This document shows, one piece after another, positions 6,009 to 62,987 of a DNA stretch of 64,000 bases. The position numbers were made by a program, and so were the translations under genes. The DNA comes from Macrostomum lignano (taxonomy: Eukaryota). Position 1 is the stretch's first letter; every line of letters begins with the position of its first letter. The notes beneath the pieces were generated by a model. The model saw only the letters and a program-made list of their open reading frames with translations. It was not told where the DNA came from and did no database searches. The stretch spans positions 248,001-312,000 of the forward strand of contig NIVC01000045.1 in assembly GCA_002269645.1 (NCBI GenBank), read 5' to 3'.

Positions 6009-8924
<2,916 letters not shown>

Positions 8925-23456: not shown

Positions 23457-23705
23457 ACACAGATCGCCGCTGTTTTAGTTCAAAATGACAAACACTTCAC
23501 TGAAGCGCTTCATTCGATCTGGTGCTCATTCAGTCGGGACAGCCACTTGACTCAAAATATATTGATATTATAATCTCCATACAGTTACAAAAACCGCTGG
23601 GGTCTCGGTCAGAAAAAAGAAGTAAAACGCAAAACAAACTCAAGAATATATATTGTGTACTCAAGCGACCCACACGAAGCACTTTCAGGCAGTCTGGCGG
23701 GACTC

Positions 23706-25397: not shown

Positions 25398-25879
25398 CTG
25401 CAGTGTTGTTAAGGAGGAGGTTTAAATTATTATTCTTTCGATACATATCGGCTATTTCAATTCCGAAGAATTGGCGTCAGCGCTGGTTGTGGGACCGATG
25501 TCACCGAAGGCGCTGCGCCATGCAGGTGCCGGCAACCCTTGCTCAAAATACATGCAATGATTTACTATAACTAAAATCAGCTTACTTCTCCAAACAATGC
25601 CAGCATCTGCGGTAGCCACGGTGCTGTTCAGTGCTGAGTCATTTGACATAGCTCTTTGTTTGGTTGCAGCCAAAAAACAGCCAAGCGTGCGAACAAACTA
25701 AAACTTTTTGTTAAATAACAGAAAGTGAAGAGCTGTGCTGAGAGTCGAGCCCAGGACTTCTCGGCTTAGTCGGACTGCTTACTGAGTCATGGCCGGTCAG
25801 GGATCACACGGGTTTTGTCAACGGCAGGAAATGGCGGCGCAGTGTCCCCATCTGAAGTGTTTTTTGTGATTTTGTGAGG

Positions 25880-30600: not shown

Positions 30601-33600
30601 CTCTGATTGGCTGGAAGCGGAGTGGGATGGATGGTTTTGTCTCTGATTGGCTGGAAGCGGAGTGGGATGGATGGCTTTGTCTCTGATTGGCTGGAAGCGG
30701 AGTGGGATGGATGGTTTTGTCTCTGATTGGCTGGAAGCGGAGTGGGATGGATGGTTTTGTCTCTGATTGGCTGGAAGCGGAGTGGGATGGATGGCTTTGT
30801 CTCTGATTGGCTGGAAGCGGAGTGGGATGGATGGTTTTGTCTCTGATTGGCTGGAAGCGAAGTGGGATGGATGGTTTTGTCTCTGATTGGCTGGAAGCGG
30901 AGTGGATGGATGGTTTTGTCTCTGATTGCTTCAATACGAGCGTAAATTTCTGTAACGAATTTCAAAGATTCGAATTGCTGTTGCAGCAACTTCTTGTTCG
31001 CTGCTTTTCTAAGTAAATTCACTGATTTTTCCGAATGGAAAAACTTTTCGGTCAAAAATGAGAAAAGTTCAAAGTCGTGATCTTCAGCTTCCTGTTCGCC
31101 AGTGTGCTTGCAAGTTTGGGAATAATAATCGTGGACTTAATCGAGGTCTGTTCGTGCTTTTTTTAAATTACATGGTTTCTCAATTTTTGTTCTTATTGCT
31201 GCCCTGATTTGCAAAGCTTCTTGAAGTTTAGAAGTTTGTTCTATTTACACTTAAGGTGGCAACGACATACTGTATTCAAAAAATTTTAGAGACTATATTT
31301 TTTTCGATTACACTTTCTCGACAGACTTCTTATTTTTACGAAACAGTTTTTAAAGTTCTCGTTTTTTAATTTGTTAAAAATTGGTTGCATTGAAGCGATG
31401 TTGTGTCATAAGCCATCTCTGATTTGCTGCGAGCAAAGGAGTGAGGGGGTGTCAAAGCCGTTTCTGATTGGTTGCGAGCAAAGGAGTGAGGGGGTGTCAA
31501 AGCCGTTTCTGATTGGCTGCGAGCAAAGGAGTAAGGTGGGTGTCATGGCCGTCCCTGATTTGCTGCGAGCAAGGGAGTGAGGTGGGTGTCATGGCCATCT
31601 CTGATTGGCTGCGAAAAAGGGAGTGAGGTGGGTGTCATGGCCATCTGTGATTTGCTGCGAGCAAAGAAGTGAGGTGGGTGTCATAGCCATCTCTGATTTG
31701 CTGCGAACAAGGGAGTGAGGTGGGTGTCATGGCCGTCTTTGATTTGCTGCGAGCAAGGGAGTGGGGTGGGTGTCATGGCCGTCCCTGATTGGCTGCGAGC
31801 AAAGGAGTGAGGTGGGTGTCATGGCCGTCCCTGATTTGCTGCGAGCAAGGGAGTGGGGTGGGTGTCATGGCCGTCCCTGATTGGCTGCAAGCAAAGGAGT
31901 GAGGTGGGCGTCATGGCCGTCCCTGATTGGCTGCGAGCAAGGGAGTGAGGTGGGCGTCATGGCCGTCCCTGATTGGCTGCGAGCAAGGGAGTGAGGTGGG
32001 TGTCATGGCCGTCCCTGATTTGCTGCAAGCAAGGGAGTGAGGTGGGTGTCATGGCCGTCCCTGATTTGCTGCAAGCAAGGGAGTGAGGTGGGTGTCATGG
32101 CCGTCCCTGATTTGCTGCAAGCAAGGGAGTGAGGTGGGCGTCATGGCTGTCCCTGATTGGCTGCGAGCAAGGGAGTGAGGTGGGTGTCATGGCCGTCCCT
32201 GATTTGCTGCAAGCAAGGGAGTGAGGTGGGTGTCATGGCCGTCCCTGATTTGCTGCAAGCAAGGGAGTGAGGTGGGTGTCATGGCCGTTTCTGATTTGCT
32301 GGTAAAAACCAACTCCAAATTCAATTCCGATACCCGCAGGACTTCACGGTGGACATGTACTTCCGCCAGCGGTGGCAGGACAAGCGCCTGGCATTCGCCA
32401 GCTACCTGAAAGGTCGCGAGGACGAGCTTGAAGGCAGCGTCAACATCGCCGAGGAAATGCTGCACAAAATCTGGTGGCCCGACACATTTTTCGCCAACGC
32501 AAAGAAGTCCGAGTTCCATCACGCCACCACAAGGAACGCTTTCCTGCGGATTGACAGCCTGGGAAATGTCTTCCACAGCCTCAGGTGCGGTCTGGGAGCG
32601 GAGCGAGAGAGAGCTACTCAATGAGTAGACCCTCAGTCGGAGAGAAGGCAAGCAGTCATGCCCCATTCCGCTGAGCCTTAGGCCGCACACAAGCTCACAC
32701 AGCGGCCTTGACTTTCTTATTGGCTGGCAGTGTACAGTCTCTTTTCCTTGGAGGTTGGCACTCTGAGGCGCGAATCGCAGAACAAGACATAAGCCTATTA
32801 ATTTGTGCGACTTAGATTCAGAGTGAGAATGAGAGTGAGAGTGAGAAAGTGAGATTGAGATTGAAAGAGTGAGGGTGAGAGAGAGTGAGAGAGAGAGAGA
32901 GAGTGAGAGTGTGAGAGTGAGGGTGAGAGAGAGAGTGAGTGTGAGAGTAAGAGTAAGAGAGAGTGAGGGTGAGAGTGTGAGAGTGAGAGTGAGAGAGTGA
33001 GAGTGACACTGAGAGTGTCAGTGAGAGTGACAGTTCACGCAGCACAAAAGAGCTACTCAAGCCGGCAAACATCAGGACTCAATACAGCTAGCAGCTCAAG
33101 GGGAGGCTGGGGCAGGGCAGGATGAAGCTGCCTTCAACTCAGCATTGGCGCTGTCAATTTCGCATAGATGCGATCCTGAGTATCTCAAAAGTGGCACTTC
33201 AAAACTTGCCAATTTGAATGCATGTCGCGCTTTAGCCTTAATTTTACTAAATGGATTTCCGTTGCCAATTAGTTTGGGCTGAAATTTCGGAGGCAGTTTT
33301 GGTCAATTAGTGATAAAAGCTGCAGCGCTAGAGAGGGATATTGCTCATTGAGGTAAGGCTTTGCAATTATGGCCGTTACATCCTCCCGCTTTCAAAGGCC
33401 GTTTTTCATAGATTAATCAATTTAGTGAATGGAAATGCGATTTTGTACTTAGGTGTTTTAGGAATGCAAATAGGGGATATGTAAATGCGAATAGGGGACC
33501 TGTAAATGCGAATAGGGGACCTGTGAATGCGAATAGGGGATCTGTGAATGCGAATAGGGGACCTGTGAATGCGAATAGGGGATGTGTGAATGCGAGTAGG

Positions 33601-36600
33601 GGATGTGTGAATGCGAATAGGGGACCTGTGAATGCGAATAGGGGATCTGTGAATGCGAATAGGGGACCTGTGAATGCGAATAGGGGACCTGTGAGTGCGA
33701 ATAGGGGATGTGTGAATGCGAGTAGGGGATGTGTGAATGCGAATAGGGGACCTGTGAATGCGAATAGGGGATCTGTGAATGCGAATAGGGGACCTGTGAA
33801 TGCGAATAGGGTATCTGTGAATGCGAATAGGCGATGTGTGAATGCGAATAGGGGATCTGTGAATGTGAATAGGGGATCTGTGAATGCGAATAGGGGATCT
33901 GTGAATGCGAATAGGGGACCTGTGAATGCGAATAGGGGATGTGTGAATGCGAGTAGGGGATGTGTGAATGCGAGTAGGGGATGTGTGAATGCGATTTAAG
34001 GGACCTGTGAATGCGAATAGGGGACCTGTGAATGCGAATAGGGGACCTGTGAATGCGAATAGGGGATGTATGAATGCAAATAGAGTGTCTGTGAATGCGA
34101 AAAGGGAACTTTGAATACAAATATGGGATTCGAGAATGGGAATATGTAATCTGTGAATCGGAATAAGAGATCTGCGAATGGAAATGTGAAATCTGTGAAT
34201 GGGAATATGTGATATGTGAATTGGATATTGGGATCTGTGAATGATAACGGGGGATCTATGAATGAGAAGACATCTTACTTGACTTACTTGACTTAGCTGC
34301 AGGGTGGTCCGTAGACACAGCGGGGAGGCGAGGGTCGCCCATTCCGCTAGCCCCTGAAGGCCCGCAGACAGGCAGAGGCGTGGGGCCGGTCAGGGTGGTC
34401 CGCCGGTCCGTCCTGCAGCGTGATCTTCCGTTGGGAAGAAACTGGCTCGTCTAGTCGCCCGAAGGAACTGGATGAGCCGTGGGATGCTGTCGGGCTGACA
34501 AACCTCGTCAATGGACGGGTTCGGCCCGAGGTAGCGTAGCCGGTCTCTGTTAAAGAAAGGGCAGTGACAGACAAAGTGCTGAGCATCTTCATTGTCGCAC
34601 TCGCAAAAGGGGCAAATTTCGCTCTCGAGGTCGCCTCGGAGGAAGCAGTGCCTGGCGAGGTAGCCATGGCCGGTAAGGGTCATGACAAGGGCTCGAATAT
34701 CCTTCCGATTCTGGTTCAGAAGGATGTTTCTGAGCCTGTGAGACGGGCAAGGAACCGCGGCACGAGATTGCCGGCAGTTTTGGGTGCCCGCCCATCTGTC
34801 CCTGTGGAGGGAGTCAGCCCAGTCGTCGATCTGACGATTGATGACTGTCAAGGGCATAGGGACCAGGGGGGCAGGGCCGAAAAAAGAGCCAGAGCCGCCC
34901 CTCTTGGCGAGGGTGTCTGCCAGCTCGTTCCCCGGAAACCCTGCGTGCCCTGGGATCCACTTCAGCCTGACAGTATTGCTTCTGGCCAGGAGGTTGAGCT
35001 GCCGGGCGCAGTCGGCGACTGTCCGGGAGTTCGTTGTGGTGTGGCAAAGGGCCTGTAAGGCCGCTTGGCTGTCGGAGTGGATGACAATAGTCTTTCCTCT
35101 CGTAACCTTGGCGTTTAGCTCTGCAGCGCAAGAGCTGATGGCAAGGACTTCGTTCTGGAAGACTGTGGAGAGTCTACCAGTGTGCTGGGCATGCGTGGCA
35201 ATTACGCGGCCGTTGATGATGATGCAGACCCCAAAGCCGGCGCGACCGTCTTTGATGGATCCGTCCGTGTAGCAATGGACCTCCTGGAAATTCCAGTGGT
35301 CATTGGCAGCATCCCTAGAGGGGATGGTGACCTTGTAGCGCTGAAAGAGGTTGAGAGTGCGGGGTTCGCCGTCAGATAGGACGTGGAGCCCGCCGCTGTC
35401 TCTCAAGTCCTTGAGGCAGAGGTCAGCGTGGGGCAGAAGCTTGCGCTTAGCCATGGCCCTATGGGGCTGGATTCGAATGCCAGCGTCAGCTAGACGGCGG
35501 GCAGTCTTAGCCGCTTCCCTGCGGACAAAGATGTCCAGCGGAGGAATGTTGAGGAAGGCGTTGAGGCCATCGTAAGGAGCAGACGGAGGGGCGCTCATGA
35601 TCGTGCGACAAGCGCGCCCTTGCGCTCTCCTGAGAGCCTCTAGACAGGTCTTTATCTGCAGGGCGCTAGCCCAGATCAGGCCGCCATACGAGATAGCGGG
35701 CCTAACCATTGCAGTGTAGATCCACCAGAGGCGCTTGGGGTGAGCCCCCAGGTGGTGCCGACGGCCCTGCGCAATTGCGCGAGGACTGCGAAGGCCTTTT
35801 TGGCTTTTGTTTGAACGTGGGGAGACCAGTTCAGCCTGTGGTCCAGGGTAATACCCAGACATTTAGTCTGCTTGCAGAAGGGGATTTCCCTTCCGTAAAG
35901 CGTGAGCGGCCGAATCTGCCACTTGGTCCTGCTGGTGAACATGATCGCTGCGGTCTTAGTCTCAGAGAGCCTTAAACCACAGCGGTCCGCCCATTGCTCA
36001 GCAGCGTAGATGAAGTTCTGAAGAAGGTCCCTGAGGGTATCAGGGGACGGACCAGATGCCACCGCGGTGACATCGTCCGCATATCCAACTTTCAGAATGG
36101 GGTCAGGCCGAACATCCCGGAGGAGCTCATCGATGACCATATTCCAGAGAACTGGAGACAGCACCCCACCTTGCGGGCTACCTTTGCAGACGGGGACCGT
36201 CCTCTGGTAGCCCAGCAGACTGGCGGTGGCCGTGCGATGGCTGATCATGTACATGATCCATCTGGTGAGATGTGAGTGCGTTAGCCTCTCACAAAGAGCT
36301 CTTCGGAACGCCTCAAAGAGGACGTTATCGAAGGCGCCAATGATGTCCAGGAAGATCCCCAGAGCAAAGCCACTACCAAGCACGGCCTTCTCGAGTTTAT
36401 CGACCAGGACGTGCAGCGCGCTTTCAGTGGAGCGACCCGCCCGAAAAGCGTGCTGGTTCTCGCTGAGAGGTTTGTTCTTCAGCTCAACAGAGAGAAGGCG
36501 CCAAAGCACCAGTCTCTCCATCAGCTTGACCAGGGAGGAGGTCAAGCTGATCGGTCTGAAGGATTTGATAGAATGGTAGTCCGGGCGGCCTGGCTTAGGG

Positions 36601-39600
36601 ATAAAGATCACCTTTGCCTCGGTCCATGCCTGCGGGACATAACCAAGCGTGATGCATGCCCGAAGAAGGCTGCAAAGTTTGCGCAGGAAGCCTGGGCATT
36701 TAACCGCCTCTCTTAGAAGGGCCGGTACAATGCCGTCGGGTCCTGGGGCTTTGAAAGGCTTGAAGGAATTTGCCGCTCTCACAATGCGGTCCTCCGTGAT
36801 GATAGATGCAGCCAGCGCGTGACCTCCCTCCGAGTGATCCGGAGTGGTCTGGTTAGCTGGCTCGTTAGGGAAAAACGCAGTGAGCATTACATCAAGCGTT
36901 TCCCCTGGGTTGTCCGTGGACGTACCGTCGGTGCGTTTGACCGAGGAGAGCTTAGACATTTTGTCCAGCGTGAGCGCTTTCACAACTCTGGAGGTGGGGC
37001 GTGAGCCCTCTAGCTCCTCACAGTATTGTCGCCATTTTTGAGCCTTTGCATTCCTAACCTGCCTTTTAAACTCATGAATTGCTTCATGATAGGCGGTTTG
37101 GTCTGCAGGGCTCTTAGTTTTAGTTGCTCTGCGGTGGAGTCTCTTAGCCCTGCGACGGAGGTTGCCGAGCTCGGGATTCCACCACGGCGCCGATTTTTTC
37201 CCTTTATAGGCTTTTAAAGGGCAGGACGCCTCAAAGGCGGCGGTTAGCGTCTCTGTCAAAACAGTCGCGCACTCATCCGCCTCTCGGCACGACGTGATCG
37301 TGGATGGTTGGCCAGGAGACCGATGGAATTCCTTCAGGGCGAGCCCGAAGGTTTCCCAATCCGTATTTCTGGCGTTCCGTCTCCACATAACACGAGTTGC
37401 GCTACGCGCGGCCATTAGGTTGAAGGAGATGAACTTGTGATCCGATAGTGAGGACACTGGAAGCACCCGCCACGCCCCAATACTCTGGTAGAGTCTGGGC
37501 GTTGCGAGCGTAGCGTCGATCACCTCCGACCACCGTCCGTTGTCAAAGGTAGGGGTGGACCCAGAGTTGCAGAACTCGAGGGTCGTAGAGGCAACGTAGG
37601 CTAGGAGGTCTTCGCCTCTCTGATTAATGCCAGTGCTGCCCCAGTGAGTGTGGTGGGCGTTGATGTCGCCGGCAACCATGAGCTCGTAGTTTTTGGCAGA
37701 GCAGAGCTCTACCAGCGTAGCGAGGGCTCTGGGGACGACCGCAGCATCGCCTGGTAGGTAAACCGAGGCAATGAGGGTGGTCTTCCCAGGAAGAAGGTCC
37801 TCGGATTGGATGACGCAGATGTCCCTGTTGGACAGGTCCGATCTGAGCCACGCACTGAGCGTTTTGCTCGCAAAGATGCAAGCTCTGGGAGGCTGGTTGG
37901 CCTCGCGAGGGTAAGTATAAAAACAATTGTAGCCAGCAGGGGCGTTTTGAGGCTTACCTCTGAGAGTCCAGGGTTCCTGGACGAGGATGAGCCCCGGCTT
38001 GTCGAGCTCGGCGTAACGCATAAGGTTGACCGAGGCTGCGACGCAGTGCTGCAGATTAATCTGCAGGCAATGGATTCCCTGGTTGCTGATCATTATCACG
38101 CAGTTGGGGAATCGTTGAGCAGGTCATCCTCCTCCTTTTCAGTGGTGGGTGACCCGCAGACCTCCATGGGAGTTTCAGCGTCCTCAGCAGTTAGGGTGGC
38201 TGTGGAGTCCTCCGCGGACGTGAGCCCAGCGTGGACGTTACCGTCGCCTCTCCTGCGTGCTTCGGTGCTGTCACTGCCCGTCCCCTCTGCCTCGTCGGTC
38301 AGGTCGATGCGGGTGGCGCCAGCCTCCTGGTGAGTCACAGACTCGAACCAGTCGGTCGGAGCCTCCCCGCTTAGAGTCTGGCCTTCTGGCTGTTGGGGTG
38401 GAGCGCGAGAAGCGCGGGCCCGCTCACGATGCGCACGAAGGTTCTTGGCCTGGTCCAGCGCGCGCTGGATCAGGCCGGACCTCCGGGTGCTCCTGGCGGG
38501 TCTGCGATTGCGATTTCCGGTTTCAGCAGCGCGAACTGCCTTACCGGGCATAGGATCGGCCGTTTGCCTCGGCTTCTTTGCCGGAGGAGCCTGGGCCCCA
38601 GTTCCGGTTTCGGAAGCTTTGGCATTCTTGGCTTCATCAGCTTTCCGCTCCTCGCAACGGAGGATGGTCAGCTGAGTCAGACCAATATGAATTGTGGACT
38701 TAGGCGGCAAGCGCTTAGCCCAGTCATCAGAGAGCCCTAGGATCACCGTAGCCCCCTTCTCCTTGCGGGAAGTGGCGTGGTGTAGGAGCCCGTTGACCTT
38801 AAGGTCGGGGTGCAGCTTTAGCAATATTTGCCTAAGCTGATCTCCGGACTTAATGGCACTGCCGGCCGGGATCCAGACGCGAAAGCGCTGGGTCTTCTGT
38901 CGTTCGCCCTCGCTGGCGAAGACGAGCTTGCCGAGCTTCTTGGGCCAGTTCAGCTTTGGCAGAAGCTCGCGTAGATTGCGGCTGCTCTCCTCCGAGCTGC
39001 ACCAGATGAAGATGCAGCCGTCGGTCTTGGCAGACTTGACCACGCTCACAGGGCGGCCCGCCAGGAGCTGGTCGATGAGCGCAGCATCGATGGTGCGCCA
39101 GGCACTGTCGAGCTCGTCGGCCGTGAGGTCCTGCTCTTCCCGAAGACGATGACCGCCGGTTGGAGCTTGACCTTTGAGGCGTAGTTGGTGGCGGCGGTTC
39201 CCGAAGGCCCGGCCGCGCTTGTAGCAGGTATACTGGGTGGCTCACCAGCGGGGGTTGTATCCTGGGGGGCAGGGGTTGCTGTGGTTCCTTTCGGCCCAAC
39301 AGCAGCCTCGCCCTCCCTAGGTTCCCCCTCCGCCGGTGGCCGGCCCGCAGTACCCCGTAGTCGCCGTCGCCGCTCGTTGCGGCGTTGGTTGCGGGTGCGT
39401 CGGGCTTCAGCGGAGGGCCCGGTTGCGCGTGCGGGCATGTCACCAGCCGAGCCGGCGGCAAGCCCATCTGCCCCCGGTGGGGCGGCGCTGGTGCCAGAGT
39501 CACCGGCCGGAGTTGCCGGGGCCCCGGCTTCAGCGGGGGTTAAAGAGGCGGATGACGCCATAGCTGAAAGCGGGAAGGAGTGAGCTGAGTCACAAAAGAA

Positions 39601-42600
39601 AGAGGAAAGAAGAAAAAGAAAAGGACCGCTAGCGACCGGACAACCCCCGGCCTTCCAGCCCATCGGCACGGTCAAACACCTTAGGCATTAGGGGGTACGT
39701 TAAGCAGTACCACGGCCTGCAGGCTGGCAAGCCAGACCCGCATACCCAAATTCGGCCGAAGCCACTGGATGGGTCGCCAGCGTCGGAGCCCAGTCTGTCC
39801 AGCAGCCCTAGGGTCTGCCTTGAACACACGCGGGGACGAGTACCCTGGGTCGACTTGTGAAACAGCGTGAGGGGGGGGGGTCTGCGGCTGCCAGCGGCAA
39901 ATAGCGGGTGCAGACCTCCCTCTCCAGCCTTGACCTGCTGAATATAGGGGCAGGCGTGAAGCATCGCAGACCGTAGCCCTTAGGCCTGGTCTGTCTCATA
40001 CTTCACTGGCGTGCTGAATACACCTTCGCGTGCATGAGAAGACATCAGTAAATATATGAGCCTAGTCATATATGAGTTTTAAAAAACTTCAGTACAATGA
40101 CATTAATTATTACATGTATATAGATAAGTATTGCACTATTAGATCGTCACAGATAAAGCCTTCAACAGGGATCTGCAGCATTTCACACTCTTTCTCCCTT
40201 CAAATCGGTCAGTCGATTTTGTCCCCCCCCAAATAGTGGAGCAAACTTGAGCAATTCGCTCATGAAGATGCAGCATCCGTTAGCTAATATAATCCAGCCT
40301 CCCGTTGCTTCTTGCAGACTTTCTTTGCAGAGATACTCCTTGCACAGAACACCACAGACCCCCGGGCGGTCTTTCTTGACTTCTTCTCTGCTTATCCCAA
40401 AACGGGATATCCTTGCCGCAAGGGAGATTCAGCGAACTTGCCAACGGACTCGCTGAGTATTCCTTTAGACTCGGTGAGTCCTGTCGGTCTCTGTCCGACT
40501 GACAGCAGCTTCTCAAAAGAGGAAGTCACACAGTCGGTTTGAGAAGTTAAACTGGCTGCGGGGCAAGGCAGTCTGATCCCTCTGGGATGGAGGGGAACGC
40601 CGCCTCAGTGAGAGGGAGTTTATTTAATTTTTCACAGCCTCTCGAGCTGCATCTCGGACTCAGAGCGGCTCCAGCAGTCATCTGCATCAACATTTTGATC
40701 AAAGTTTTTTTTGATGGAACTTTAATAACATTCATTCTTCGCCCGGTTGCAAATTGAAATTCAACTCTCGATGATGAAATAAAATTTAAGTGACCTGTTC
40801 GATTCTAATTCAAATCGAAAGTTCGAGCATAGGAAACATGGGAAAATGACCTTGATTGTCACTTCTGGAGCTGGCGCCCCTTGGTGCTAAAGCCCCTTGG
40901 TGCTAAAGCCCCTTGGTGCTAAAGCCCCTTGGTTCTAAAGCCCCTTGGTGCTAAAGCCCCTTGGTGCTAAAGCCCCTTGGTGCTAAAGCCCCTTGGTGCT
41001 AAAGCCCCTTGGTGCTAAAGCCCCTTGGTGCTAAAGCCCCTTGGTGCTAAAGCCCTTGGTGCTAAAGCCCCTTGGTGCTAAAGCCCCTTGGTGCTAAAGC
41101 CCCTTGGTGCTAAAGCCCCTTGGTGCTAAAGCCCCTTGGTGCTAAAGCCCCTTGGTGCTAAAGCCCCTTGGTGCTAAAGCCCCTTGGTGCTAAAGCCCCT
41201 TGGTGCTAAAGCCCCTTGGTGCTAAAGCCCCTTGGTGCTAAAGCCCCTTGGTGCTAAAGCCCTTGGTGCTAAAGCCCCTTGGTGCTAAAGCCCCTTGGTG
41301 CTAAAGCCCCTTGGTGCTAAAGCATTAACAAAAGACATTGGCATCAGCTAAAATACCAGCAATTAAAGGTGCTGGCGCCCCTTGGTACTTCAGAATAGAC
41401 CAAACCAGACCGACAAAAAATATTAAAGGCTCTCAGATCAACAGTGTATTATATAGATAGTGCTATTTTTAGCAATTAGCGATGCACTTCTGTTTTATCC
41501 GTTGGAGTGCAGGCATTTTCTAAGAAAAAAAGCAAAATTTCAGTGGTTAGTGCTGCAGAAAAAAATTGGTAAGTTGTGTTGCATCTTGCAGATTACAGTT
41601 ACAGTTGTTAAAATGAATGCTCTGCTTAAGATATAATGAAAAAAAATTTTCACGTTTGCAGATCAGAAATGCTTTCCAGTGTACATGCAGGTTTAGAAAA
41701 CTAACAAAAAATCTACACTGGCTAAATCAATAAGTAACTCTTTGTAGTCTTTGTTACTGAAAAAAGAGTTGTTTTGGTGCTGTATGGTCTTTGTTATCGC
41801 AGTGGGAGTGAGTTGGGTGTTATGGCTAATATATGTTATCGAGAGAGACTGAGGTGGGTGCTATAGCTAGTCTTTGTTAGCGCAATGGGAGTGAGGTGGG
41901 TGTTATAGCTAGTCTTTGTTATCGCAGTGGGAGTGAGGTGGGTGTTATAGCTAGTCTTTGTTATCGCAGTGGGAGTGAGGTGGGTGTTATAGCTAGTCTT
42001 TGTTATCGCAGTGGGAGTGAGGTGGGTGTTATAGCTAGTCTTTGTTATCGAAGACGGAGTGAAGTGGCTGTTAAAGCTTAGCTAGTCTTTGTTATCGAAG
42101 ACGGAGTGAGGTGGATATTGTATTTTTTGTAAACGCAATGAGAATAATTTTGTTTCTGTACGATCCTAGTTAGGGTGTAAGGGTCCACCAATTCAGTAAG
42201 TCCTGCAGTCTTTGTCATTTCTAGTACAAGAGTGTGGCTTCAATTAGATGCAGACTTGGGCAAACTGCCTTTCACAGTTTTGTGCGAATGCCGCTCAGCC
42301 TCCAGCATCATCTCCCGATGTCGTTCGGTCTCTGCCAGAGTGGGATCAATCAGCCTGTCTAAATATCCCGGATCCTGGAAGTAATTCATTCTTGGCAACG
42401 GCTTTGTGGTTGAATTGGGCATCATCACGCCTTTGTAGGTTCGATTTTTCTGAGCCGGGCGGAAGATGGTGTTGCGGAATGACAGGCAGTTGCCGAAGGA
42501 GGTCGTGTAGGCGCCGTCAATTTCGCGCTTGTCGATAATCCAGTCACTGCGAGGTCGCTCCGCCACCATGTCCATGAGAGTGGAGGGGACTGCGGGTTTG

Positions 42601-47571: not shown

Positions 47572-49953
47572 GATAGATTAGCAATCCATTCTATTCCTGC
47601 ATTCATATTGGAGAGATAGATTAGCAATCCATTCTATTCCTGCATTCATATTGGAGAGATAGATTAGCAATCCATTCTATTCCTGCATTCATATTGAAGA
47701 GATAGATTAGCAATCCATTCTATTCCTGTATTCATATTGAAGAGATAAATTAGCAATCCGTTCTATTCCTGCATCAATATTGGAGAGGTAGATTAGCAGT
47801 CCATTCTATTCCTGCATTCATATTGAAGAGATAGATTAGCAATCCATTCTATTCCTGCATTCATATTGAAGAGATAGATTAGCAATCCATTCTATTCCTG
47901 CATTCATATTGAAGAGATAGATTAGCAATCCATTCTATTCCTAAATTCATATATTGAAGAGATAGATTAGCAATCCATTCTATTCCTGCATTCATATTGG
48001 AGAGATAGATTAGCAATCCATTCTATTCCTGCATTCATATTGAAGAGATAGATTAGCAATCCATTCTATTCCTGCATTCATATTGAAGAGATAGATTAGC
48101 AATCCATTCTATTCCTGCATTCATATTGAAGAGATAGATTAGCAATCCATTCTATTCCTGCATTCATATTGAAGAGATAGATTAGCAATCCATTCTATTC
48201 CTGCATTCATATTGAAGAGATAGATTAGCAATCCATTCTATTCCTAAATTCATATATTGAAGAGATAGATTAGCAATCCATTCTATTCCTGCATTCATAT
48301 TGAAGAGATAGATTAGCAATCCATTCTATTCCTGCATTCATATTGGAGAGATAGATTAGCAATCCATTCTACTCCTGCATTCATATTGAAGAGATAGATT
48401 AGCAATCCATTCTATTCCTGCATTCATATTAAAGAGATAGATTAGCAATCCATTCTATTCCTGCATCAATATTGGAGAGATAGATTAGCAGTCCATTCTA
48501 CTCCTGCATTCATATTGAAGAGATAGATTAGCAATCCATTCTATTCCTGCATTCATATTGAACAGAGATTAGCAATCCATTCTATTCCTGCACTCATTTT
48601 GAAGAGATAGATTAGCAATCCATTCTATTCCTGCATTCATATTGAAGAGATAGATTAGCAATCCATTCTATTCCTAAATTCATATATTGAAGAGATAGAT
48701 TAGCAATCCATTCTATTCCTGCATTCATATTGAAGAGATAGATTAGCAATCCATTCTATTTCTGCATTCATATTGGAGAGATAGATTAGCAATCCATTCT
48801 ATTCCTGCATTCATATTGAACAGATAGATTAGCAATCCATTCTATTTCTGCATTCATATTGAAGAGATAGATTAGCAATCCATTCTATTCCTGCATTCAT
48901 ATTGAAGAGATAGATTAGCAATCCATTCTATTCCTGCATTCATATTGAAGAGATAGATTAGCAATCCATTCTATTCCTGCATTCATATTGAAGAGATAGA
49001 TTAGCAATCCATTCTATTCCTGCATTCATATTGAAGAGATAGATTAGCAATCCATTCTATTCCTGCATTCATATTGAAGAGATAGATTAGCAATCCATTC
49101 TATTCCTAAATTCATATATTGAAGAGATAGATTAGCAATCCATTCTATTCCTGCATTCATATTGAAGAGATAGATTAGCAATCCATTCTATTCCTGCATT
49201 CATATTGGAGAGATAGATTAGCAATCCATTCTACTCCTGCATTCATATTGAAGAGATAGATTAGCAATCCATTCTATTCCTGCATTCATATTAAAGAGAT
49301 AGATTAGCAATCCATTCTATTCCTGCATCAATATTGGAGAGATAGATTAGCAGTCCATTCTACTCCTGCATTCATATTGAAGAGATAGATTAGCAATCCA
49401 TTCTATTCCTGCATTCATATTGAACAGAGATTAGCAATCCATTCTATTCCTGCACTCATTTTGAAGAGATAGATTAGCAATCCATTCTATTCCTGCATTC
49501 ATATTGAAGAGATAGATTAGCAATCCATTCTATTCCTAAATTCATATATTGAAGAGATAGATTAGCAATCCATTCTATTCCTGCATTCATATTGAAGAGA
49601 TAGATTAGCAATCCATTCTATTTCTGCATTCATATTGGAGAGATAGATTAGCAATCCATTCTATTCCTGCATTCATATTGAACAGATAGATTAGCAATCC
49701 ATTCTATTTCTGCATTCATATTGAAGAGATAGATTAGCAATCCATTCTATTCCTGCATTCATATTGAAGAGATAGATTAGCAATCCATTCTATTTCTGCA
49801 TTCATATTGGAGAGATAGATTAGCAATCCATTCTATTCCTGCATTCATATTGAAGAGATAGATTAGCAATCCATTCTAATTCTGCATTCATATTGGAGAG
49901 ATAGATTAGCAATCCATTCTATTTCTGCATTCACATTAAAGAGATAGATTAGC
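47572..49953. repeat. 43-bp minisatellite (ATAGATTAGCAATCCATTCTATTCCTGCATTCATATTGAAGAG), ~55 copies
   Basis: Directly visible; begins about 40 nt after the RDL exon 8 donor. Confidence 0.98.
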
Positions 49954-50453
49954 ACGTCATTTCTCACTGCTCAAAAATCAATCAACATAATCAATAATCA
50001 GTAACAACACAGGATTTTTTGAAGCAAAACTCGATTTAAAAAATGCCAGAGAGAAAATATTTTATATTTGTTAAGACTTTACGTAGAGCAACTCAAAAAA
50101 AACATTGAGAATCTGCAGCCGAAACGAATCAAACAAACCTGTAATCATTTCTACTCGATATTTTTGAGCAAGGTAAAAACATAACAAGCAACAACAGGCG
50201 GGCAGTTAAAAATATAATTCGGAGCAACTAAAAACCCAAAATCCAACTTCAAGCGCAAGAGAAAGACGGTGTTTTCAAAAGATAAACAGGCAATAAAAAG
50301 TTAGAAAATATTTTAAACACTTCAAATATCTATTGGAGCATAAAAATGCATTAGCAAAGGTGGTTAAAAACTAACAAATTAATCAACAACAACAACAGGC
50401 CCAAGAAGTATTGCTCAGACTAACACACAGTTATTTTCAAAAGTCGTTTTAAA

Positions 50454-53400
50454 TCAGACTTGGCTTGCCGGATGAGCGTTTGGCGACGAGCTTGGTGCCA
50501 CATTAGGTGCCGCATTAGGCGCTAAATTAGACCCAGCATTAGGCGCAGTCCCTGCCGTTCGACTGCAACTTGCAGCCGAAGCCCGTCGACTCGATGCAGC
50601 GGCTGAGGCCCGTCGACTTTCTGGCGGCTGAGGCAGCCGCGGGGGCGCTGGAACCTCCGTGCTGGGCAGGCGGGTTGGATCGGCGGCTCTGCCGGTGTTG
50701 TTGATGTTGCTGTTCCTCCTGTTGCTGCTCTCGGGCGCATCAGGCCTTGACGCTGCGGGGTTCTCACTGGCTGGTGCGGGTGCTGGTGCTGGTGCAGAGG
50801 TTGCAGTTGCTGTCAAGCCTTTCTCAGCATCTCTCTGCTGCTGCTGCTGCGGCTTATCGTCACTGTCAAACATCAGACTTCGCCGCTGGCTGTTAGTGGA
50901 CGGCTGTTGCGGCCGAATCCTGCTGCCGTAGTTGTTGCGGCGCATTCTGTACAGTCGAATAATGAGTAGAGTGCTCAGGATGAGCAGCAGGAGGCAGGCC
51001 ACGCCCAGGATGCAGTAGATGGCGATTGGCACAGACTGTTCATCGGTTTTGTCCAACTTAGGCTGACGATGGACGGCGATAGGCGCGGTGGACACAAAGG
51101 AGCCGTCTCGGTCAAGCTGCAGGCCGTGGAAAGGACTGCTAGAGGAGAACAGAGCCTCAGTGTTGAGCTCGATATGCTTGGCAGCAGAGCCGGTGTCGAG
51201 CAGCCTAGGGTAGATCTGGTAGCTGACAGAGACCAGGATGGACCCGGGGCTGTACCGAACTGCAGTCACCTGGCCGGAGAACAGGTTGGCAACTCCGCGA
51301 AGGTAGACAGCCAGGGATCGCTTGATAGCCTCGGTGGTGTCCAGGTACAGCAGCGAGCTGGAGTTGCGCAGATCGTCTGGAAATCCGGCGGAATCGAAGC
51401 GCAGCAGCTGGTAGATCGGCACCGGCTGGATCGGGGTCACCTCGCCCAAGGCCAAGGACCTGCCAGCGATGTCGGCGTAGGCATTCAACGAGCTGGCCAG
51501 CTGGTTGATAGCGTCAGTGGCTTCGTCAGGATTGAATGGCTGGCTGGAGTTGTGCAGGGTGAAGTAGGCAGCCGCGGCAGTTGCTGGGATGCGGCGAGCT
51601 GACAGCGGATGCGGCCGGAGGAGGCCGCGCTGGGTGACCCGGGCGGCGCACAGGTCGTCAACAAACCGGAGGCGACCGCTGCCGCGCTGGCGGAAGGCTG
51701 AGGCGATTAGCAGGCAGATAAAGTCGCTGGTGAGGCTGCTGTCGTTGCGGCTGTCTGGCTGAGCGGGGCCGCTGTCCACCAGGTGCACCGACTGCTGCAC
51801 GGCCACGCCGGAGTGCATGAGCTGCAGGTGGTGCCGGTCATAGTGCTGCGGCTGGTGGTCGAAGTCCTGCATGGAGGAAAGCGGGAGGAATCTGCTGGTA
51901 AAGATCATTTGTAGTGATCTTTGTGATGACCCCCTGTGAGCCATGGCATCTCAGCAAACCCCCCCCCCCACTGACTGAGCCATGGCATCTCAGCAACTCC
52001 CCCATTGAGCCATAGCATCTCAGCAAGCCTTGAGTCAGCCAGACAAACAAAGCAACAAACAAATAAACAAACCTGCAAAGGCAGAGTGAGGTTGGAGCTG
52101 GTCAGACCCGTCAGGTTGGCAAGCTGAGCTCGCAGCTGCCGTGGCGTGGAGTCCGGATTGCGCGGGCCAGTGGAGGCGAGCGTGGCCAACACGCTGACAA
52201 GCTGATGGTGCCGGCCGGGACCGCCAGATCCCAGACGCTTCCAGCGCATCAGGCGGAGCTGCACCACTCTGATGCTGTTAGACGAAGCCGACGACCGGCT
52301 TAGAAGCGCTTCGAGATGGCGTCGAGCCCCGGCTGCCAAAGCGTAACCGTGCAGCGACGGGCCCTCCTCGGCGTAGTCGAAGGTGGCCTGGACGTCGAAC
52401 CAGTCAGCAACGCCCGCGGGCAGTCCGGTGCGCCTGGTCAGCAGCCGCAGGTCGATGCCTCTGCTGGACAGCTGGGCTGGCAGCACGTGCTCGTTGGTGG
52501 CCAGACGCAGCAGCTGCTTGGTCACGTGATCCCGGATGTCAGCCTCGGAAACGTCTGCTCTAGCCAGCAGGCGGACCAACAAGAAGGCGATCACGGTGGA
52601 GTTGCGACCGTAGCACTCAAAATCGAAGCCGGCTAAGGTGAGGCTGCTGACATTGCCGAGGCTGGTGCCGTTGCCGGGGTACAGCTGGCCAAGGATGAAA
52701 TGCAGCCGGTGCCGCATCAGCTGGTTGAGATCGTCGTGGCTGAGCTTGCGCATCGTGTCTGAGCCGACAAAGCCGTCAAACTGCAGTCGCTGGTAGATCA
52801 ACAAGCCGACTGTCTCGTTGGCGGCGTCGGCGGTTGCCACCGGGCGGAGCTCCTGGTGCCGAGCTAGACAGAGTGAGCAGCTGGCCAGCTCATTATTAAC
52901 AGCCACCCAGGCTGCAGAAAAGCCGTCCATGACTTGGCGCTGACTGAGGCCGGCAGGTTTCGGATAGCGGATGCACAGAGTCACTGAGATGTTGTCAGAT
53001 CGCAGCCAGGCCAGTTTAGGCCAGTCTGAGCTGGTCTGATTGGTCCAGCGCTGCATAGCGGTGTTGAGCAGCCGCTGGGTGAGGAAGGACAGCAGAGGGT
53101 CTGGGCGCAGTGGAATGTCTCTGTAGCGATAGAAAACTGGCAGAGATGGGCTGGCAAACAGCTGCAGTCGGTGCTCAACAAACTCGGACGACGCTGCAGA
53201 ACTTGTTGAACGCCTTCGACGACTCTTGCTAGCTGACGGTTGCGCTGGAGTATCAGACTCTGTAGAGTTCTGCGGCGGAGTAGGCAGGGGTTCGAACTCT
53301 GGCCACACAGTGACAATGGGACGATCAGTGAACAGTGCAGCAGCCAGAGGCCAGTTGGAGACGGCTTGAGCAACAGACAGTCGCAGGTGGTCGGGCGAAT

Positions 53401-56400
53401 CTACAGCCGATGGCGGTTGAAATTTGGCCAGAGCCTGGCCGAGTCCCAGTTCGGCTGTAGTTGCATTGTCCGACAGGTCCCGGCTGATGTTGGTGACAAT
53501 AAGGTGTTGAGCAAGTTTTGAAACGCTAGCGTTAGCCAAAAGGGCGTCGTTGAGCAGAGAACGGGCCAGCAATAGCGCCATGGGCGAGTCCGGTTCAGCC
53601 AGGTAGTCCCAGGTAGCATTGGACAGAGGGAACTGCAGCTTCAGGTTGTAGTAGAGTACAGTTCTCGGCCTAGTAGTTGTTGCAATGGTTGATGCGGATG
53701 CTGGGCTAGTTGTGGTAGCGACCGTGATGGCGGTGGTGGCGGTGGTGTCGGTGCTGTCAGTGGTGGTTGCAGCGGCTGCAGAAGTGCCGGTTGTGGTGGA
53801 GTTCGTCACCAGCTGCGCAGGTTTGGTGACGCTATCAGGCTGCACGGAGATGTACACGCTGACATCCTGTACGTGAACTCCTTCGGACAGCACCAGCTCC
53901 CCGGAATTGAAGTAGAAGTTCTTAATAGCCAGTGCACTCTGGAATGCTCTAGTAGCTGTCGAAGCGACTTCAACTGACTTGGTCTGCGACACCACCGTGG
54001 CGGAGATGTTCATGCGCAGGCCTGGGATCGACAGCTGCGGCTGCTGCTGGCTGACGGCGACTCGAATGTTGGCGGCGGTCACCGCGGCGGAGCAGCTGTG
54101 CGGCACCACGTAGAGAGCGAACCAGTGCGCTGACTCGAGCGAGCTCTGGTACAGGTGGCAGGCGTACTTGGCCAGCTTGTCGGAGTCTGCAAGAGCAGCG
54201 GAGTTGCCGCTGATGAAGGTCACGGCCTGGTTCACGCGTCGGTAGCGAGTTGAAGAGCCGGGGCCGAGGCTGGCGGCAGAGCTGGAGCCGTGGAACGGTG
54301 CCGCAACTGCACGGGTGGTCAGGCGACTTGGCGACTCCACTGCCGCGGCCGCCTTCATCAAGATGCTGGTCGCTTGGTCAAATGGCAGAGAGCGGGATGA
54401 GCTCATGGTGACCAGGGCTTGAACTTCTAGCAGGTGTGTGGCGCTGGAACCGGTTGCCGGGCCCCACTGCAGCACTGCCAGCCGTTCCAGGTGAGTAGGC
54501 TGCTGCAGTTTCGGCGCCAACAGCTGACTCAGATAGGTCGCGAGTTCGAATCCTTGAGCAGGCAGCCTAGCGGATTCCACGGTGAATGAGTAGACTAAGT
54601 CGCACCAGAACGGCTGGCTGAGGCCCTCCTTTAAATCGACAACTCGAACGTCGGTTTTGCCGACACTGAACACACTGGGCACCAGGTTGATATCGTTCGC
54701 CAGCTGCTCGAGCCGCTGCATGACGTGCAGCTGCAGGCGCTGCTCCAGTTTAGCCAGCCGGAAGCCGGGCGGAATGGCCACCCGAGTCAGGGCCACAATC
54801 TCCAGAGCGCCGTCCTTCTTCGCGTAGGTGGCGTCAACGTCGAGGAACTGCGGCACCGAGGCGCTGCCACCGGGGAACACCTGTTGCATGACGTATCGAA
54901 TCTTGGGCCGCAACAGCAATGCCAGGTAGTCTGACGGCAGCGACATGAGCGACTTCTTGTTGATGTAGCTCTCCAGACGGAGGCGCTGGTAGAGCAGCAG
55001 GCCGCGATGAGGCGGTGGCGGGCCAGGCCGGAAGTCCAGGTACAGGATGCTGCGCAGAGTGCTGGCTGAGGGTTGCCGACGCTGCCAGGCTGAGGCAAAG
55101 TCGGAGCTGAACAGCTTCAGTCTGCTCGCATTCACCTGGCTGATGTCATATCTCAGCTGGAGCAGAGCCAGCTCCTTGTCGGCTTTGTAACGAATGAGTC
55201 GCGGCCGCCCAATCAACTGCTGGCTGCCGCAGGCGTCGGCGACCAGCTGCTGGAACAGGAAGTCCAACAGCAGGTCCTCCCTCGCGCTAGAGTCCATGCC
55301 GCCTACAGTTCTCAGTCGCAGGTAGTCTGGCGCGGTGTCCGCGAGTCTAATCAGCATGGTCTGGTCGATGGACAGGCGAGCTGAAGCAGGCGGCGGCTGA
55401 GGTGTTGCTACGGCAGGCTGAGGCCGGTACAGGTAGCGTCTGGTAGGTAAATTGACAATCAGCACTGAGTAGGCTCGCTTTGAGAACACTGTGCTCAGCA
55501 GCATAGACTGATCCACGCCAGTGCGCAGGACCGACTCTAAATCGGCAATGTTTCTACTGGCAGGCAGAAGCAAGTCAACGCTGATGTAGATGGTCATGCT
55601 GTTGGAGTCCACAGAGATTCTAACTGCGCCAATCTCATCGGAAGCAATCTGCCAAGCGGAACGTTGCAGACTCTGTTGAAGAGCTGACTTGAGCAGATAG
55701 TCGCTAAGGGCTTTGGCTTCTTCAGCAGAAGTTTGATTGGCGCTTTGAGGTGCCGCCGCTGCCAAGAAGTAGCGAGCTAGCCAGGGATCAGCTGGCATGC
55801 TCAAGTTGATGCTTAGAGTTGCCATGCGATCGATAGGAATGTAGTCAGGTCCCATCGGGTGCGGAGATGTCGGAGCTGGAGTTGTGGTAGCTGCAGCTGT
55901 AGCACCTTTAAGAGTCTGCTGGGTTGTTGGCAGAGGACCTCCGGGAGCTGGTGTAGCTTTTGCCTCATCAGTAGCAGCAGCAGTAGTAGTTGTTGCAGTA
56001 GTCGCTTCTGATGTTGCCACTGAAGTCTGGACAACGGTAGCCGCAGTTGTAGTTTCCATAGCAACTGTGCTGACATTGACAACCCGATGCTCTGGAGCCG
56101 GAGGCAGCTGCCTGATGATGAGGCTAGCATAGGAGTCCTCGCTGGAGTTGGGCCGCTGCTGATCCAGCTGCTGCAGGCGCATCCGGTCCAGATCGATGAA
56201 GGACTCATTGGATGACAGGTAGAAGTTCTTGAAGGCCCAGAAGCGCTGCATGACGGTGTCTGGCGGCATGCTGGTGAAGGCTGACACGGTTGACAGTTGC
56301 AAAGCAGCCGAGGTGGCATTGGACAGCGGATTGAGTCGAATTCGATGCTGCTCAACCAGATTAGAGACGCAGACTCCGCCTTCGCTATTGGTATTGAACA

Positions 56401-59400
56401 GAGCGTGAGCCCAGGTGATGAGGAAGCAGAAATACTCGCCGGATGAGTCGCTGCTCTGCCGGCTGAACGGCTGCAGAGCGGAGTGGCGCACCAGGACAGT
56501 CAGGTTCGCTGTGGACGGACCGTCACTTGTCGAGAGGACATTGTCAGACAGAGACCTGGCCGCGATCAGTCGCTTGTCGCTGGTAGCCGTGGCCGACCAG
56601 TTCAACAGTTGGACAGCCACCTGGGAGCAGCTGACGGCGGCGCCAGCCTGCGGCACCACTGCCAAGGCCTCGATGGTGCCAGACGGATCCGTGGGCAGCG
56701 ACAGAACGGTCACGTGACTGGCGTTGGCACCGAGCCAAGCCGACAGGCGATTGGCTACCGGCAGCCAGGAGGCGTCGGCGGCAGCTACGGCAATGTCGGC
56801 GGGCGAAGGACGGAACCGGAGCAGCAGGTCGCACCAGCGCGGAGCTGTCAGGCCAGTTCGAGTGTCCAGCAGGCGCAATGTGGAGCTCTGATTGTCAAAC
56901 ACCAGTGGAAACACGTTAACATTGGCTTGAAGAGCCTCAAGCTCAGAGTTGATCAGCTTGCTCAGCGAGGTCTCATCGAAATTAGCTCCAGTTGCTGAGA
57001 CTGCAGTTCTATTTGCCGGCCAGGCGATACGGCTGAGGCCATCAATTCGAATGCTGGCATCGAGCTGACGGCGGGCTCTGTACTCGAAGCTGACCAGCTG
57101 GGGCCGGCCCTGCTGGCCGGAGAAAATGACCGACTGGACGAAGCGCAGCTTGCCGGAGAGCAGGCGGTGAAGGTCGCTCTCGGGCATGGCCTGGGAGAGG
57201 GGGGGTGTTAGGGATGGACTGGGTTGAACTGCAGGCGAAATTCTGAACTACAAAGTCGCAAAGCTCTAATAATGTGCTTTCCGGTGCATGACCACTTCTC
57301 GGGTGTATGACCCCCTCCATGACTCCATGAACCACCTGATAGACATTATGACCCATCTGATACACTATGACCCACCTGATAGACAATATGACCCATCTGA
57401 TGGACACTATGACCCATATGATAGATACTATGACCCACTTGATATACACTCAATGACCCACCTGATATATACTCAATGACCCACCTGATAGACACTCAAT
57501 GACCCACCCGATAGACACACTGATCCACCCGATAGACACTATGACCCACCTGATATACACTCAATGACCCACCTGATATACACTCAATGACCCACCTGAT
57601 ATACACTCAATGACCCACCTGATATACACTCAATGACCCACCTGATATACACTCAATGACCCACCTGATATATACTCAATGACCCACCTGATATACACTC
57701 AATGACCCACCCGATAGACACACTGATCCACCCGATAGACACTATGACCCACCTGATATACACTCAATGACCCACCTGATATACACTCAATGACCCACCT
57801 GATATACACTCAATGACCCACCTGATATACACTCAATGACCCACCTGATATACACTCAATGACCCACCTGATATATACTCAATGACCCACCTGATATACA
57901 CTCAATGACCCACCCGATAGACACACTGATCCACCCGATAGACACTATGACCCACCTGATATACACTCAATGACCCACCTGATAGACACTCAATGACCCA
58001 CCCGATAGATACACTGATCCACCCGATAGATACACTGACCCACCTGATATACACTCAATGACCCACCTGATAGACACTCAATGACCCACCCGATAGATAC
58101 ACTGATCCACCCGATAGATACACTGACCCACCTGATATACACTCAATGACCCACCTGATATACACTCAATGACCCACCTGATATACACTCAATGACCCAC
58201 CTGATAGACACTCAATGACCCACCCGATAGATACACTGATCCACCCGATAGATACACTGACCCACCTGATATACACTCAATGACCCACCTGATAGACACT
58301 CAATGACCCACCCGATAGACACTCTGACCCACCTGATAGATACACTCAATGACCCACCCGATAGACACTCTGACCCACCTGATAGACACTATGAAACACC
58401 CGATAGACTATGACTCACTCATTCGACAGACACTATGACTCACTCATTCGACAGACACTATGATTCACTCATTCGACAGACACTATGACTCACTCATTCG
58501 ACAGACACTATGACCCACCCGATAGACTGACCCACGCGATACTCTATGACCACCAGATAGACGCTCAATAAACCCCCGATAGATTATGACCTAATAGATA
58601 GACTATGACTTCCATGGACTCGAATGACCCACCCGATAGACGCTATGACCCACTAGGTAGACTATATGACCCACTCAATGAACTTCATGATAAATGAAAA
58701 TCAAATAACTATGAAAAATAGGCCTCACCTGCAGAGTGGCATTGCTAACAAAATTCCGCAACAAGTAGGTCTGCAGCATGAGTGCGCTGTTGAACAGTCC
58801 AGAAGCGGTTGGCTGGCCCGACAATCGAAGATCCGACAGTCTCACAAAGCTAAATAGCGGCATTTTATCGGCAGTAGCCGATGCCTCATCAGACAGTCTG
58901 GCCAGAGGCGACTTGGCATCCAGAGCTACCAGAGCGTCTAGCCGAGCCAGTTTAGAATCGGATTTGTATCTGACAGCCACTGGCCAAGACACGAGCCGCC
59001 CTCCGAGCAGATCTACTAGCATCTGTTCGAGCAGGAATTGCAGCCGGTTGGCGCCGCTAGATTGCGGATTAGTTGGCCAGCTGCGATAGGCCAACGGCGC
59101 GGATGCATTGACGGAGACCAAGCGCCACAGGATGGTCAGGCGGACCGGGGCGATGCTGGTTGACCCCATCACTGGCGGTGGCCGGCTGAAATAGGTCGAC
59201 GTTGCGTAGCGATAGATTATTGAAGAGGCCGGGATCTGTTGAGGCGGCAGAGTGGGCACAATGTCGGCGCGTAGGTCCACCGGTTGAAGCAGGGAGTCGC
59301 CGGATAGAGAGGCTGTTAGAGCTGTCAGGGTGATGTCGTGCATACCGGGTGATGTAGCATTGCTGCTGCTGCTGCTGTGGTTGCTGCACAATATCATGGC

Positions 59401-62880: not shown

Positions 62881-62987
62881 GTTCTGGCTGCCCAACGAGT
62901 CCGCTCTCGGTAGATGATCTGGGGAAGGGTGGGTGACGGAGTCAAGATATTTTTGACTAAATAGACTGAAGAACTGAGGAAGAGGGT

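Follow-up and report, generated by a model that had tools for sequence, protein, structure and literature searches.

The 64-kb stretch of the Macrostomum lignano genome analysed here (hereafter the window; all coordinates are positions within it) carries a 5.76-kb retrotransposon without long terminal repeats (non-LTR), whose 5′ terminus, at 40033-39782, is very probably a self-cleaving ribozyme of the hepatitis delta virus (HDV) type. Both the ribozyme and the retrotransposon are read on the minus strand. This interpretation is supported by four lines of evidence: a fold beyond what chance would produce, a comparison of filled and empty insertion sites that shows the insertion to start with the first nucleotide of the ribozyme, G1, compensatory substitutions of the closest relative in P1, P1.1 and P2, and a second family of elements, whose ribozyme is recognisable with Rfam models and abuts its own target-site duplication (TSD). 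From these observations we infer the cleavage chemistry.

Anatomy of the probable ribozyme

The HDV-like nested double pseudoknot is represented by its full set of elements, correctly ordered, in bases 1-252 of the retrotransposon:

40033-40027 (−), 5′ strand of P1, GCACGCG; G40033 is G1, the proposed 5′ end of the cleavage product, and the strand covaries with its partner in the closest relative (L001, described below)
40026-39855 (−), J1/2 peripheral domain, 172 nt with three hairpins, from minimum free energy (MFE) and centroid folds and an alignment fold with L001
39854-39846 (−), 5′ strand of P2, GUCG-A-CCCA, read from the sequence, with a check of pairing and duplex energy
39845-39843 and 39835-39833 (−), P3, GGG/CCC, 3 bp
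39842-39836 (−), L3, UACUCGU, 7 nt; U39842 and G39837 occupy the U20/G25 positions
39841, 39840 and 39825-39824 (−), P1.1, the pairs A21-U39 and C22-G38, formed by A39841 and C39840 with the GU dinucleotide 3′ of P1
39832-39826 (−), 3′ strand of P1, CGCGUGU; 7 bp with the 5′ strand, including the G1·U wobble
39823-39798 (−), P4 hairpin, recovered in constrained and unconstrained folds
39797-39793 (−), J4/2, CAGAC; its first base, C39797, would be the catalytic cytosine equivalent to C75, in a CNRA motif followed by one extra C (C39793)
39792-39782 (−), 3′ strand of P2, UGGG-CUC-CGAC; CCCA/UGGG plus the extension GUCG/CGAC, with a duplex energy of −8.8 kcal/mol

The P1 helix of HDV-like ribozymes has 6-7 bp and starts with G1, usually in a G·U pair, and GCACGCG/CGCGUGU has this form. 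P3 consists of the expected 3 bp and closes a loop of 7 nt (7-8 nt in the family) with U at its first and G at its sixth position, a layout shared with three related sequences (L001, L004 and L006). Two pairs, A-U and C-G, join positions 2-3 of L3 to the two nucleotides 3′ of P1, as P1.1 should do, CCCA/UGGG and GUCG/CGAC provide the P2 that makes a pseudoknot with P1, and P4 is followed by a J4/2 with the sequence pattern C-N-R-A. All 20 pairs of the proposed fold are standard ones; sliding the 3′ partners by 1-3 nt leaves 6-12 of 20.

The first-pass annotation of this DNA had placed the elements from P1 to J4/2, including the 172-nt J1/2, at these coordinates, and reading the sequence verified every one of them, while MFE folding reproduced the three hairpins that it had named within J1/2. 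Its description of J4/2 as CAGA holds for the CNRA pattern but not for the length, since the junction is CAGAC, of 5 nt; the same CNRA plus C is found in L004 and in the Rfam consensus of drz-agam-1.

The retrotransposon and its exact boundary

The element that starts with this ribozyme has a reverse transcriptase and an endonuclease, a 3′ repeat tail and a TSD, all of them hallmarks of non-LTR retrotransposons. Its features outside the ribozyme are:

40045-40034 (−), 5′ copy of the TSD, the 12-mer ATGTCTTCTCAT; U40034 would be position −1 relative to the cleavage
39675-38096 (−), open reading frame (ORF) 1, with an apparent frameshift near 39130 and weak DUF4780-type similarity
38099-34390 (−), ORF2, with AP-endonuclease, reverse transcriptase and RNase H (Pfam) and an apparent frameshift between 35826 and 35736 (tblastn with P0001, the protein of the closest relative)
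34296-34274 (−), 3′ tail of short repeats, (TAAGTCAAG)2-TAAG, from sequence reading
34273-34262 (−), 3′ copy of the TSD, the exact 12-mer

ORF1 starts several hundred nucleotides downstream of the ribozyme, and its match to DUF4780 has an E-value of 0.017, versus 1.8e-9 for the ORF1 of L004. The Pfam domains in ORF2 are Exo_endo_phos_2, RVT_1 and RNase_H. This APE-RT-RNase H (apurinic/apyrimidinic endonuclease, reverse transcriptase, RNase H) architecture is present as in the LOA clade, to which the element had been likened, but it does not single out LOA, being found also in I, Nimb, Ingi, Tad1 and other clades. Named database matches to ORF2 were uninformative as to clade, and a look-up of the 490-aa ORF of the window gave no exact-protein record.

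The 12-mer is found at just the two places listed. Over its last 1,376 nt the element agrees at 100% identity with NIVC01000045.1, the contig to which the window corresponds. Large duplicated blocks are known in the assembly that provided the contigs, Mlig_3_7 (PMC5730564), and the ZIP-transporter ORF of the window led us to a duplicated copy of the locus on NIVC01000114.1 (L100, ~1004-1015). There the site is empty (...ttactgATGTCTTCTCATtcatagatc...), with one copy of the 12-mer, flanks 94.7% identical to those of the window and a T as the base following the TSD. Because of this T the 5′ boundary is unambiguous, and the TSD together with the filled/empty-site comparison defines the insertion as exactly 40033-34274 (5,760 bp), with G40033 as the first inserted base. 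That G1 is the first base inside the TSD, as the first-pass annotation had it, is in this way confirmed twice, by the duplication of ATGTCTTCTCAT and by the empty site. The pair of filled and empty sites offers an unusually clean genomic proof that a predicted cleavage site is the first inserted base of a full-length insertion. Since the duplicated locus is empty, the insertion must also be younger than the DV1 duplication.

Compensatory changes in the closest relative

With 63% identity, P0001 is the closest homologue of ORF2; it lies on the Logan contig L001 (source run ERR14788467), with an ORF1 that is 34-37% identical to that of the window. The contig starts at the base that aligns with G40033, and over its first ~250 nt it runs collinear with the window. 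In the hand-aligned ribozyme core of L001 all 19 pairs are standard ones (against 6-8 with slid partners), without a single broken pair, even though the sequences have diverged at six two-sided, compensatory positions. From the window to L001, P1 changes from A-U to C-G and from C-G to U-A, P1.1 likewise from A-U to C-G and from C-G to U-A, P2 from C-G to U-A, and the P2 extension from U-A to C-G; one G·U to G-C change is also seen.

One of these helices is P1.1, which reads AC/GU in the window, CU/AG in L001 and CC/GG in L004. It had been proposed from the window sequence that the double change in P1.1 preserves the pairing, and L001 bears this out by keeping both pairs through compensation.

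Chance and thermodynamics

A GC-rich 5′ untranslated region (UTR) could resemble an HDV fold by chance, as such sequences make many helices; the 252 nt have a modest MFE z-score of −1.2, and no covariance model detects the ribozyme of the window. We searched with a structural descriptor, requiring a 7-bp P1 with G1·U, a 3-bp Watson-Crick P3, an L3 of the form U...CG, two Watson-Crick pairs in P1.1, no fewer than 4 bp each in the P4 stem and in P2, CNRA with at most one extra nt and a J1/2 of up to 250 nt. The descriptor was composed after the candidate had been seen and is in that sense not fully independent. It produced one match on the two strands of the 64-kb window, with G1 at 40033 and the putative catalytic C at 39797. 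Shuffling the window 100 times with its dinucleotide composition preserved, and the GC-rich element 1,000 times, yielded no match. The number of matches expected by chance is well below 0.01 per window, even before the position of G1 is counted. Against a fortuitous likeness stand these 1,100 empty shuffles, the location of G1 at the exact insertion boundary, the six compensatory changes in L001 and the existence of a second family with the same architecture (L004), which leave this explanation effectively refuted, with a negligible probability.

The fold is also thermodynamically competitive, since a structure constrained to P1, P3 and P4 with the J1/2 hairpins reaches −94.3 kcal/mol, to which the P2 duplex would add its own energy, as compared with −99.4 kcal/mol for the pseudoknot-free MFE.

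A loose form of the descriptor matched the plus strand at 40208-40560 (P1 GUCAGU/ACUGAC, L3 UCUCUGU, P1.1 CU/AG), adjoining the element. We regard this match as a false positive, without the C-G signature in L3 and with no retrotransposon ORFs downstream. Further matches to relaxed descriptors were dismissed as false positives of a loose pattern.

A second family with the same layout

A much more distant relative, P0010 on the long-read contig L004 (ENA ERZ25067590, ctg28909), has an ORF2 that is 36% identical and carries a compact, canonical ribozyme of 72 nt at 4025-4096, with a 7-bp P1 that includes G1·U and a P1.1 of two C-G pairs. Three Rfam families match it from one shared start G: drz-agam-1 (E=7e-5), HDV-F-prausnitzii (E=1.6e-4) and HDV (E=0.039), all three under the gathering score. 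Its J4/2 is CUAAC, and the drz-agam-1 consensus at this place is CuaAc.

The G1 of L004 adjoins a 13-bp TSD, ATACGAAAAATGC (4012-4024 and 9889-9901), and the 3′ end is (TAA)6, so that 4012-9901 comprises a complete element of ~5.9 kb with a DUF4780 ORF1, again with the predicted cleavage site as the first nucleotide of a full-length insertion. L006 (1079) holds a second, slightly decayed copy of the 5′ end of this element. As both the window and L004 show it, the arrangement of TSD, G1-ribozyme, element body, tail and TSD occurs in two separate families.

Points against a cleaving ribozyme

Several results weigh against this interpretation, and the first of them concerns detection. At the gathering score no Rfam family matched anywhere in the whole window, and at E<=10 the region 39600-40200 gave only weak noise from miRNA models on the opposite strand and no HDV-type family (RF00094, RF00622, RF01787, RF01788 and RF02682). 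Of the searches for HDV-like motifs suggested in the first-pass annotation as a check, that with the descriptor finds the candidate, with its single match at 40033, and that with the Rfam covariance models gives no match in the window. The miss is plausibly caused by the 172-nt insert inside P1, and the threshold is a criterion of detection, not of structure. R1, a covariance model of the L004/L006 core alone, missed the cores of the window and L001 as well, because it is too sequence-specific. The family assignment therefore rests on descriptor-level anatomy, the coincidence with the boundary and covariation, and not on a model score.

A second set of points concerns the relatives. Strict and relaxed descriptors found nothing credible besides L004 and L006 in ~90 further loci with 29-38% identical ORF2 (from metagenomes and metagenome-assembled genomes, MAGs, labelled as bacterial), and an Rfam E-value scan of 8 of these loci, with 4 kb upstream, gave no HDV-type match. 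The ribozyme is patchy, not universal, across the wider clade. The covariation relies on L001 as sole close homologue, with helices aligned by hand (P1 is shorter by 1 nt, and there are 2 extra nt between P2 and P3). Moreover, the P1 of L001 has 6 bp and starts with G1-C instead of G1·U, and its J4/2, CUC or CUGC, departs from CNRA, for which reasons L001 may be weaker or inactive. Finally, the window copy itself bears the two apparent frameshifts listed above; Mlig_3_7 is a PacBio/Canu assembly polished with Pilon (PMC5730564), and these frameshifts could be assembly errors.

In the remaining comparisons, the ribozyme was not recognisable, or the 5′ end was missing, in L005, L007 and L008. 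Searches of the 5′ UTRs against all loci with blastn and nhmmer matched L001 alone, and the search for ORF1 homologues returned only the L001 protein itself and one M. lignano entry of UniRef. The 5′-end comparison was made with the next-closest ORF2 relatives, P0002 (in SRR14005100), P0003 and P0004, left out.

Some of these observations would fit a different explanation, where the fold, inherited from an ancestor that had a ribozyme, survives as a relic or as a structural module with nil or negligible cleavage, the element's 5′ end is set by an internal promoter at +1, and the 5′ UTR is conserved as a promoter, a translation-initiation signal or a signal for ribonucleoprotein assembly. The state of L001, with neither a CNRA J4/2 nor a G1·U wobble, would fit such a relic, and the most conserved block of the 5′ UTR sits in J1/2, outside the catalytic core. 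There are also precedents: the Pr77 sequence of L1Tc is both promoter and ribozyme, so that dual-purpose 5′ modules are possible (PMC4035085, PMC3185411), and some R2 ribozyme-like sequences, as that of the sow bug, are inactive in vitro (PMC3774820). However, the window keeps all that the catalytic core requires (the G1·U wobble, U and G at the U20/G25 positions, one C-G pair within P1.1, and C plus NRA in J4/2), P1 and P1.1 covary, which is expected only under selection on the pseudoknot pairings, and G1 is the first inserted base in both the window and the L004 families. We consider a non-cleaving relic unlikely, and a ribozyme that cleaves at the element's 5′ end stays as the preferred reading.

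Contigs L089-L094, which belong to MAGs labelled Gammaproteobacteria, Pseudomonadota, Opitutia, Alphaproteobacteria and Cytophagales and to a ‘Candidatus Erwinia dacicola’ assembly, carry retrotransposons of the eukaryotic APE-RT-RNase H type, which are probably eukaryotic contamination of the bins.

The J1/2 domain

Two of the J1/2 hairpins have a counterpart in L001:

40006-39956 (−), hairpin 1, 51 nt, GUGAAGUAU...AUGCUUCAC around CAGACC...GGUCUG and a GGCC-UAAG-GGCU tip; equivalent to 28-78 of L001
39916-39879 (−), hairpin 3, GGUCUGC...GCAGACC, after which comes a C10 run; its L001 counterpart, GGGUCCC/GGGACCC, was spotted by eye

The C10 homopolymer, at 39880-39871, has an uncertain true length in this PacBio-derived assembly. 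Hairpin 1 is the best-conserved block of the 5′ UTR, with 88% identity to L001 over 41 nt, when ORF1 is only ~35% identical, and it is more conserved than the ribozyme core. Its internal loop GAGA/CG and its tip AGGCCYAAGGGCUA are kept, and the predicted fold is identical in the window and L001, with three two-sided compensatory pairs. Exact-pattern scans of metagenome and genome contigs for the conserved J1/2 block, GACCAGGCCNAAGGGCTANGGTC, gave 0 matches.

Helices in J1/2 that pinch P1 and P2 together are known to speed cleavage by up to ~1,000-fold (PMC4908430). Such a model requires a stable helix and not a particular loop sequence, and the conserved loops of hairpin 1 hint at an additional role. 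Rather than a mere pinch helix, hairpin 1 might be a separate functional module within the ribozyme, such as an internal promoter like that of L1Tc Pr77 or a binding site for the ORF1 or ORF2 protein, although we hold this only as a tentative and rather doubtful proposal. It is nevertheless the sole feature of this ribozyme that may hold something new, and it makes a defined target for the study of extra functions in peripheral ribozyme domains.

A putative path from transcript to insertion

The retrotransposon would be transcribed, probably by read-through from upstream or from a promoter of its own. As the RNA folds, its first 7 nt would pair, as P1, with the strand located 195 nt downstream, and the structured 172-nt J1/2 would bring together the far ends of P1 and P2. 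With the fold formed co-transcriptionally, C39797 in J4/2 would catalyse the scission of the phosphodiester between U40034 and G40033, freeing a retrotransposon RNA with a 5′-OH at G1. Full-length reverse transcription of this RNA would then result in genomic insertions that start exactly at G1.

A refinement of this scheme, which does not exclude it, is that the ribozyme cleaves but has its main role after processing, either in cap-independent translation of ORF1 or in priming or positioning second-strand synthesis at integration. An IRES-like action (that of an internal ribosome entry site) has been proposed for the HDV-like ribozymes of R2 and L1Tc (PMC6765202), the 5′ RNA structure of R2 affects insertion (PMC11331408), and a J1/2 hairpin loop conserved in sequence suggests specific recognition. 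The distance of several hundred nucleotides to the start of ORF1 speaks against the translational version, and the backing for such roles comes from the literature and not from the sequence data; we give a predominantly post-processing role a very low probability. The trimming of the transcript at G1 is the function that we favour for this ribozyme.

Comparison with known ribozymes

HDV-like ribozymes at the 5′ terminus are established for the R2, R4/Dong, Baggins, RTE and L1Tc retrotransposons (PMC3774820, PMC6765202, PMC3185411), and in R4, Dong, Baggins and L1Tc the cleavage occurs at the element's 5′ end (PMC3774820). Large J1/2 insertions are documented too, with loops of 216-498 nt in R2 of silkmoths (PMC3774820). 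The suggestion that the window holds a possibly unrecorded variant was consequently overstated: big J1/2 inserts and 5′-terminal cleavage were already on record (PMC3774820, PMC4908430), and having an A-U pair in P1.1 is a small departure. The window ribozyme is a well-supported new example of a known route of RNA trimming, with no new mechanism, and leaves the established picture of ribozyme-mediated retrotransposon processing unchanged.

The ribozymes of R2 and R4/Dong share with that of the window their place at the 5′ terminus of a non-LTR element, the HDV fold with its double pseudoknot, a very large J1/2, a conserved core of P3, L3 and P1.1, and compensatory variation in P1 (PMC3774820). 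R2, however, has a single ORF with a restriction-like endonuclease, is specific for 28S rDNA, and many of its ribozymes cut upstream in the 28S sequence, whereas the window element has two ORFs of the APE-RT-RNase H type, lies beside a satellite array and itself begins with G1. Like it, Baggins (LOA clade) and RTE are APE-type non-LTR elements with 5′ ends set by HDV-like ribozymes, and they are thought to be processed from read-through transcripts (Ruminski et al. 2011, as cited in PMC6765202 and PMC3774820). Going by the descriptions in these citing papers, those elements come from insects and nematodes, as opposed to the flatworm element with a DUF4780-like ORF1 found here.

Among individual ribozymes, drz-Agam-1 (RF01787) and L004 have the same order of elements as the window, a C-N-R-A-C J4/2 directly before the 3′ strand of P2 and a 7-nt L3 that starts with U and has CG at positions 5-6. 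They differ in having a J1/2 of ~9 nt, an ACC/GGU P3 and two C-G pairs in P1.1, against 172 nt, GGG/CCC and A-U/C-G in the window, which has no RF01787 score. Ribozymes of the drz-Agam-2 type have, as in the window, a helical J1/2 domain (P1.2) able to ‘pinch’ P1 and P2 (PMC4908430), but in the window J1/2 folds into three hairpins, and the sequence of one of them is conserved even in the loops, more than the pinch model alone would require. The L1Tc Pr77 of Trypanosoma cruzi is likewise a 5′-terminal HDV-like ribozyme of an APE-RT-RNase H element, and it cleaves at +1 (PMC3185411, PMC4035085); it is compact, with 77 nt, and acts also as an internal promoter, while the window element is known from sequence alone.

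Our literature search found no paper mentioning ribozymes in Macrostomum retrotransposons. With this example, a free-living flatworm used as a model for regeneration and transgenesis joins the organisms whose non-LTR elements set their 5′ ends with HDV-like ribozymes, and a family of APE-RT-RNase H elements with a DUF4780-like ORF1 joins the retrotransposons that use them. Curated covariance models overlook HDV-like ribozymes with long J1/2 inserts, which are probably under-annotated in repeat-rich genomes. Within this retrotransposon family, the ribozyme could serve as a marker of full-length copies.

Genomic surroundings

The window contains two recognisable host genes:

24328-25446 (−), ZIP zinc transporter, with 99% identity to BOX15_Mlig006290g3 of M. 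lignano
16942-18036 (+), ORF similar to Utp12/WD40 proteins

Three other long ORFs of the minus strand, at 51905-57187, 50454-51944 and 60682-63561, would encode 1,760, 496 and 959 aa and are without a match in Pfam, and the last of them overlaps a 40-bp tandem array. Several long ‘ORFs’ of the window are merely translated repeats. The whole stretch is crowded with mini- and microsatellite arrays, dozens of different ones, whose periods range from 4 to 134 bp (for example at 7378-8376, 9564-12423, 20174-23458, 33462-34268 and 47572-49954), and the retrotransposon is inserted at the edge of an array with a 21-bp period.

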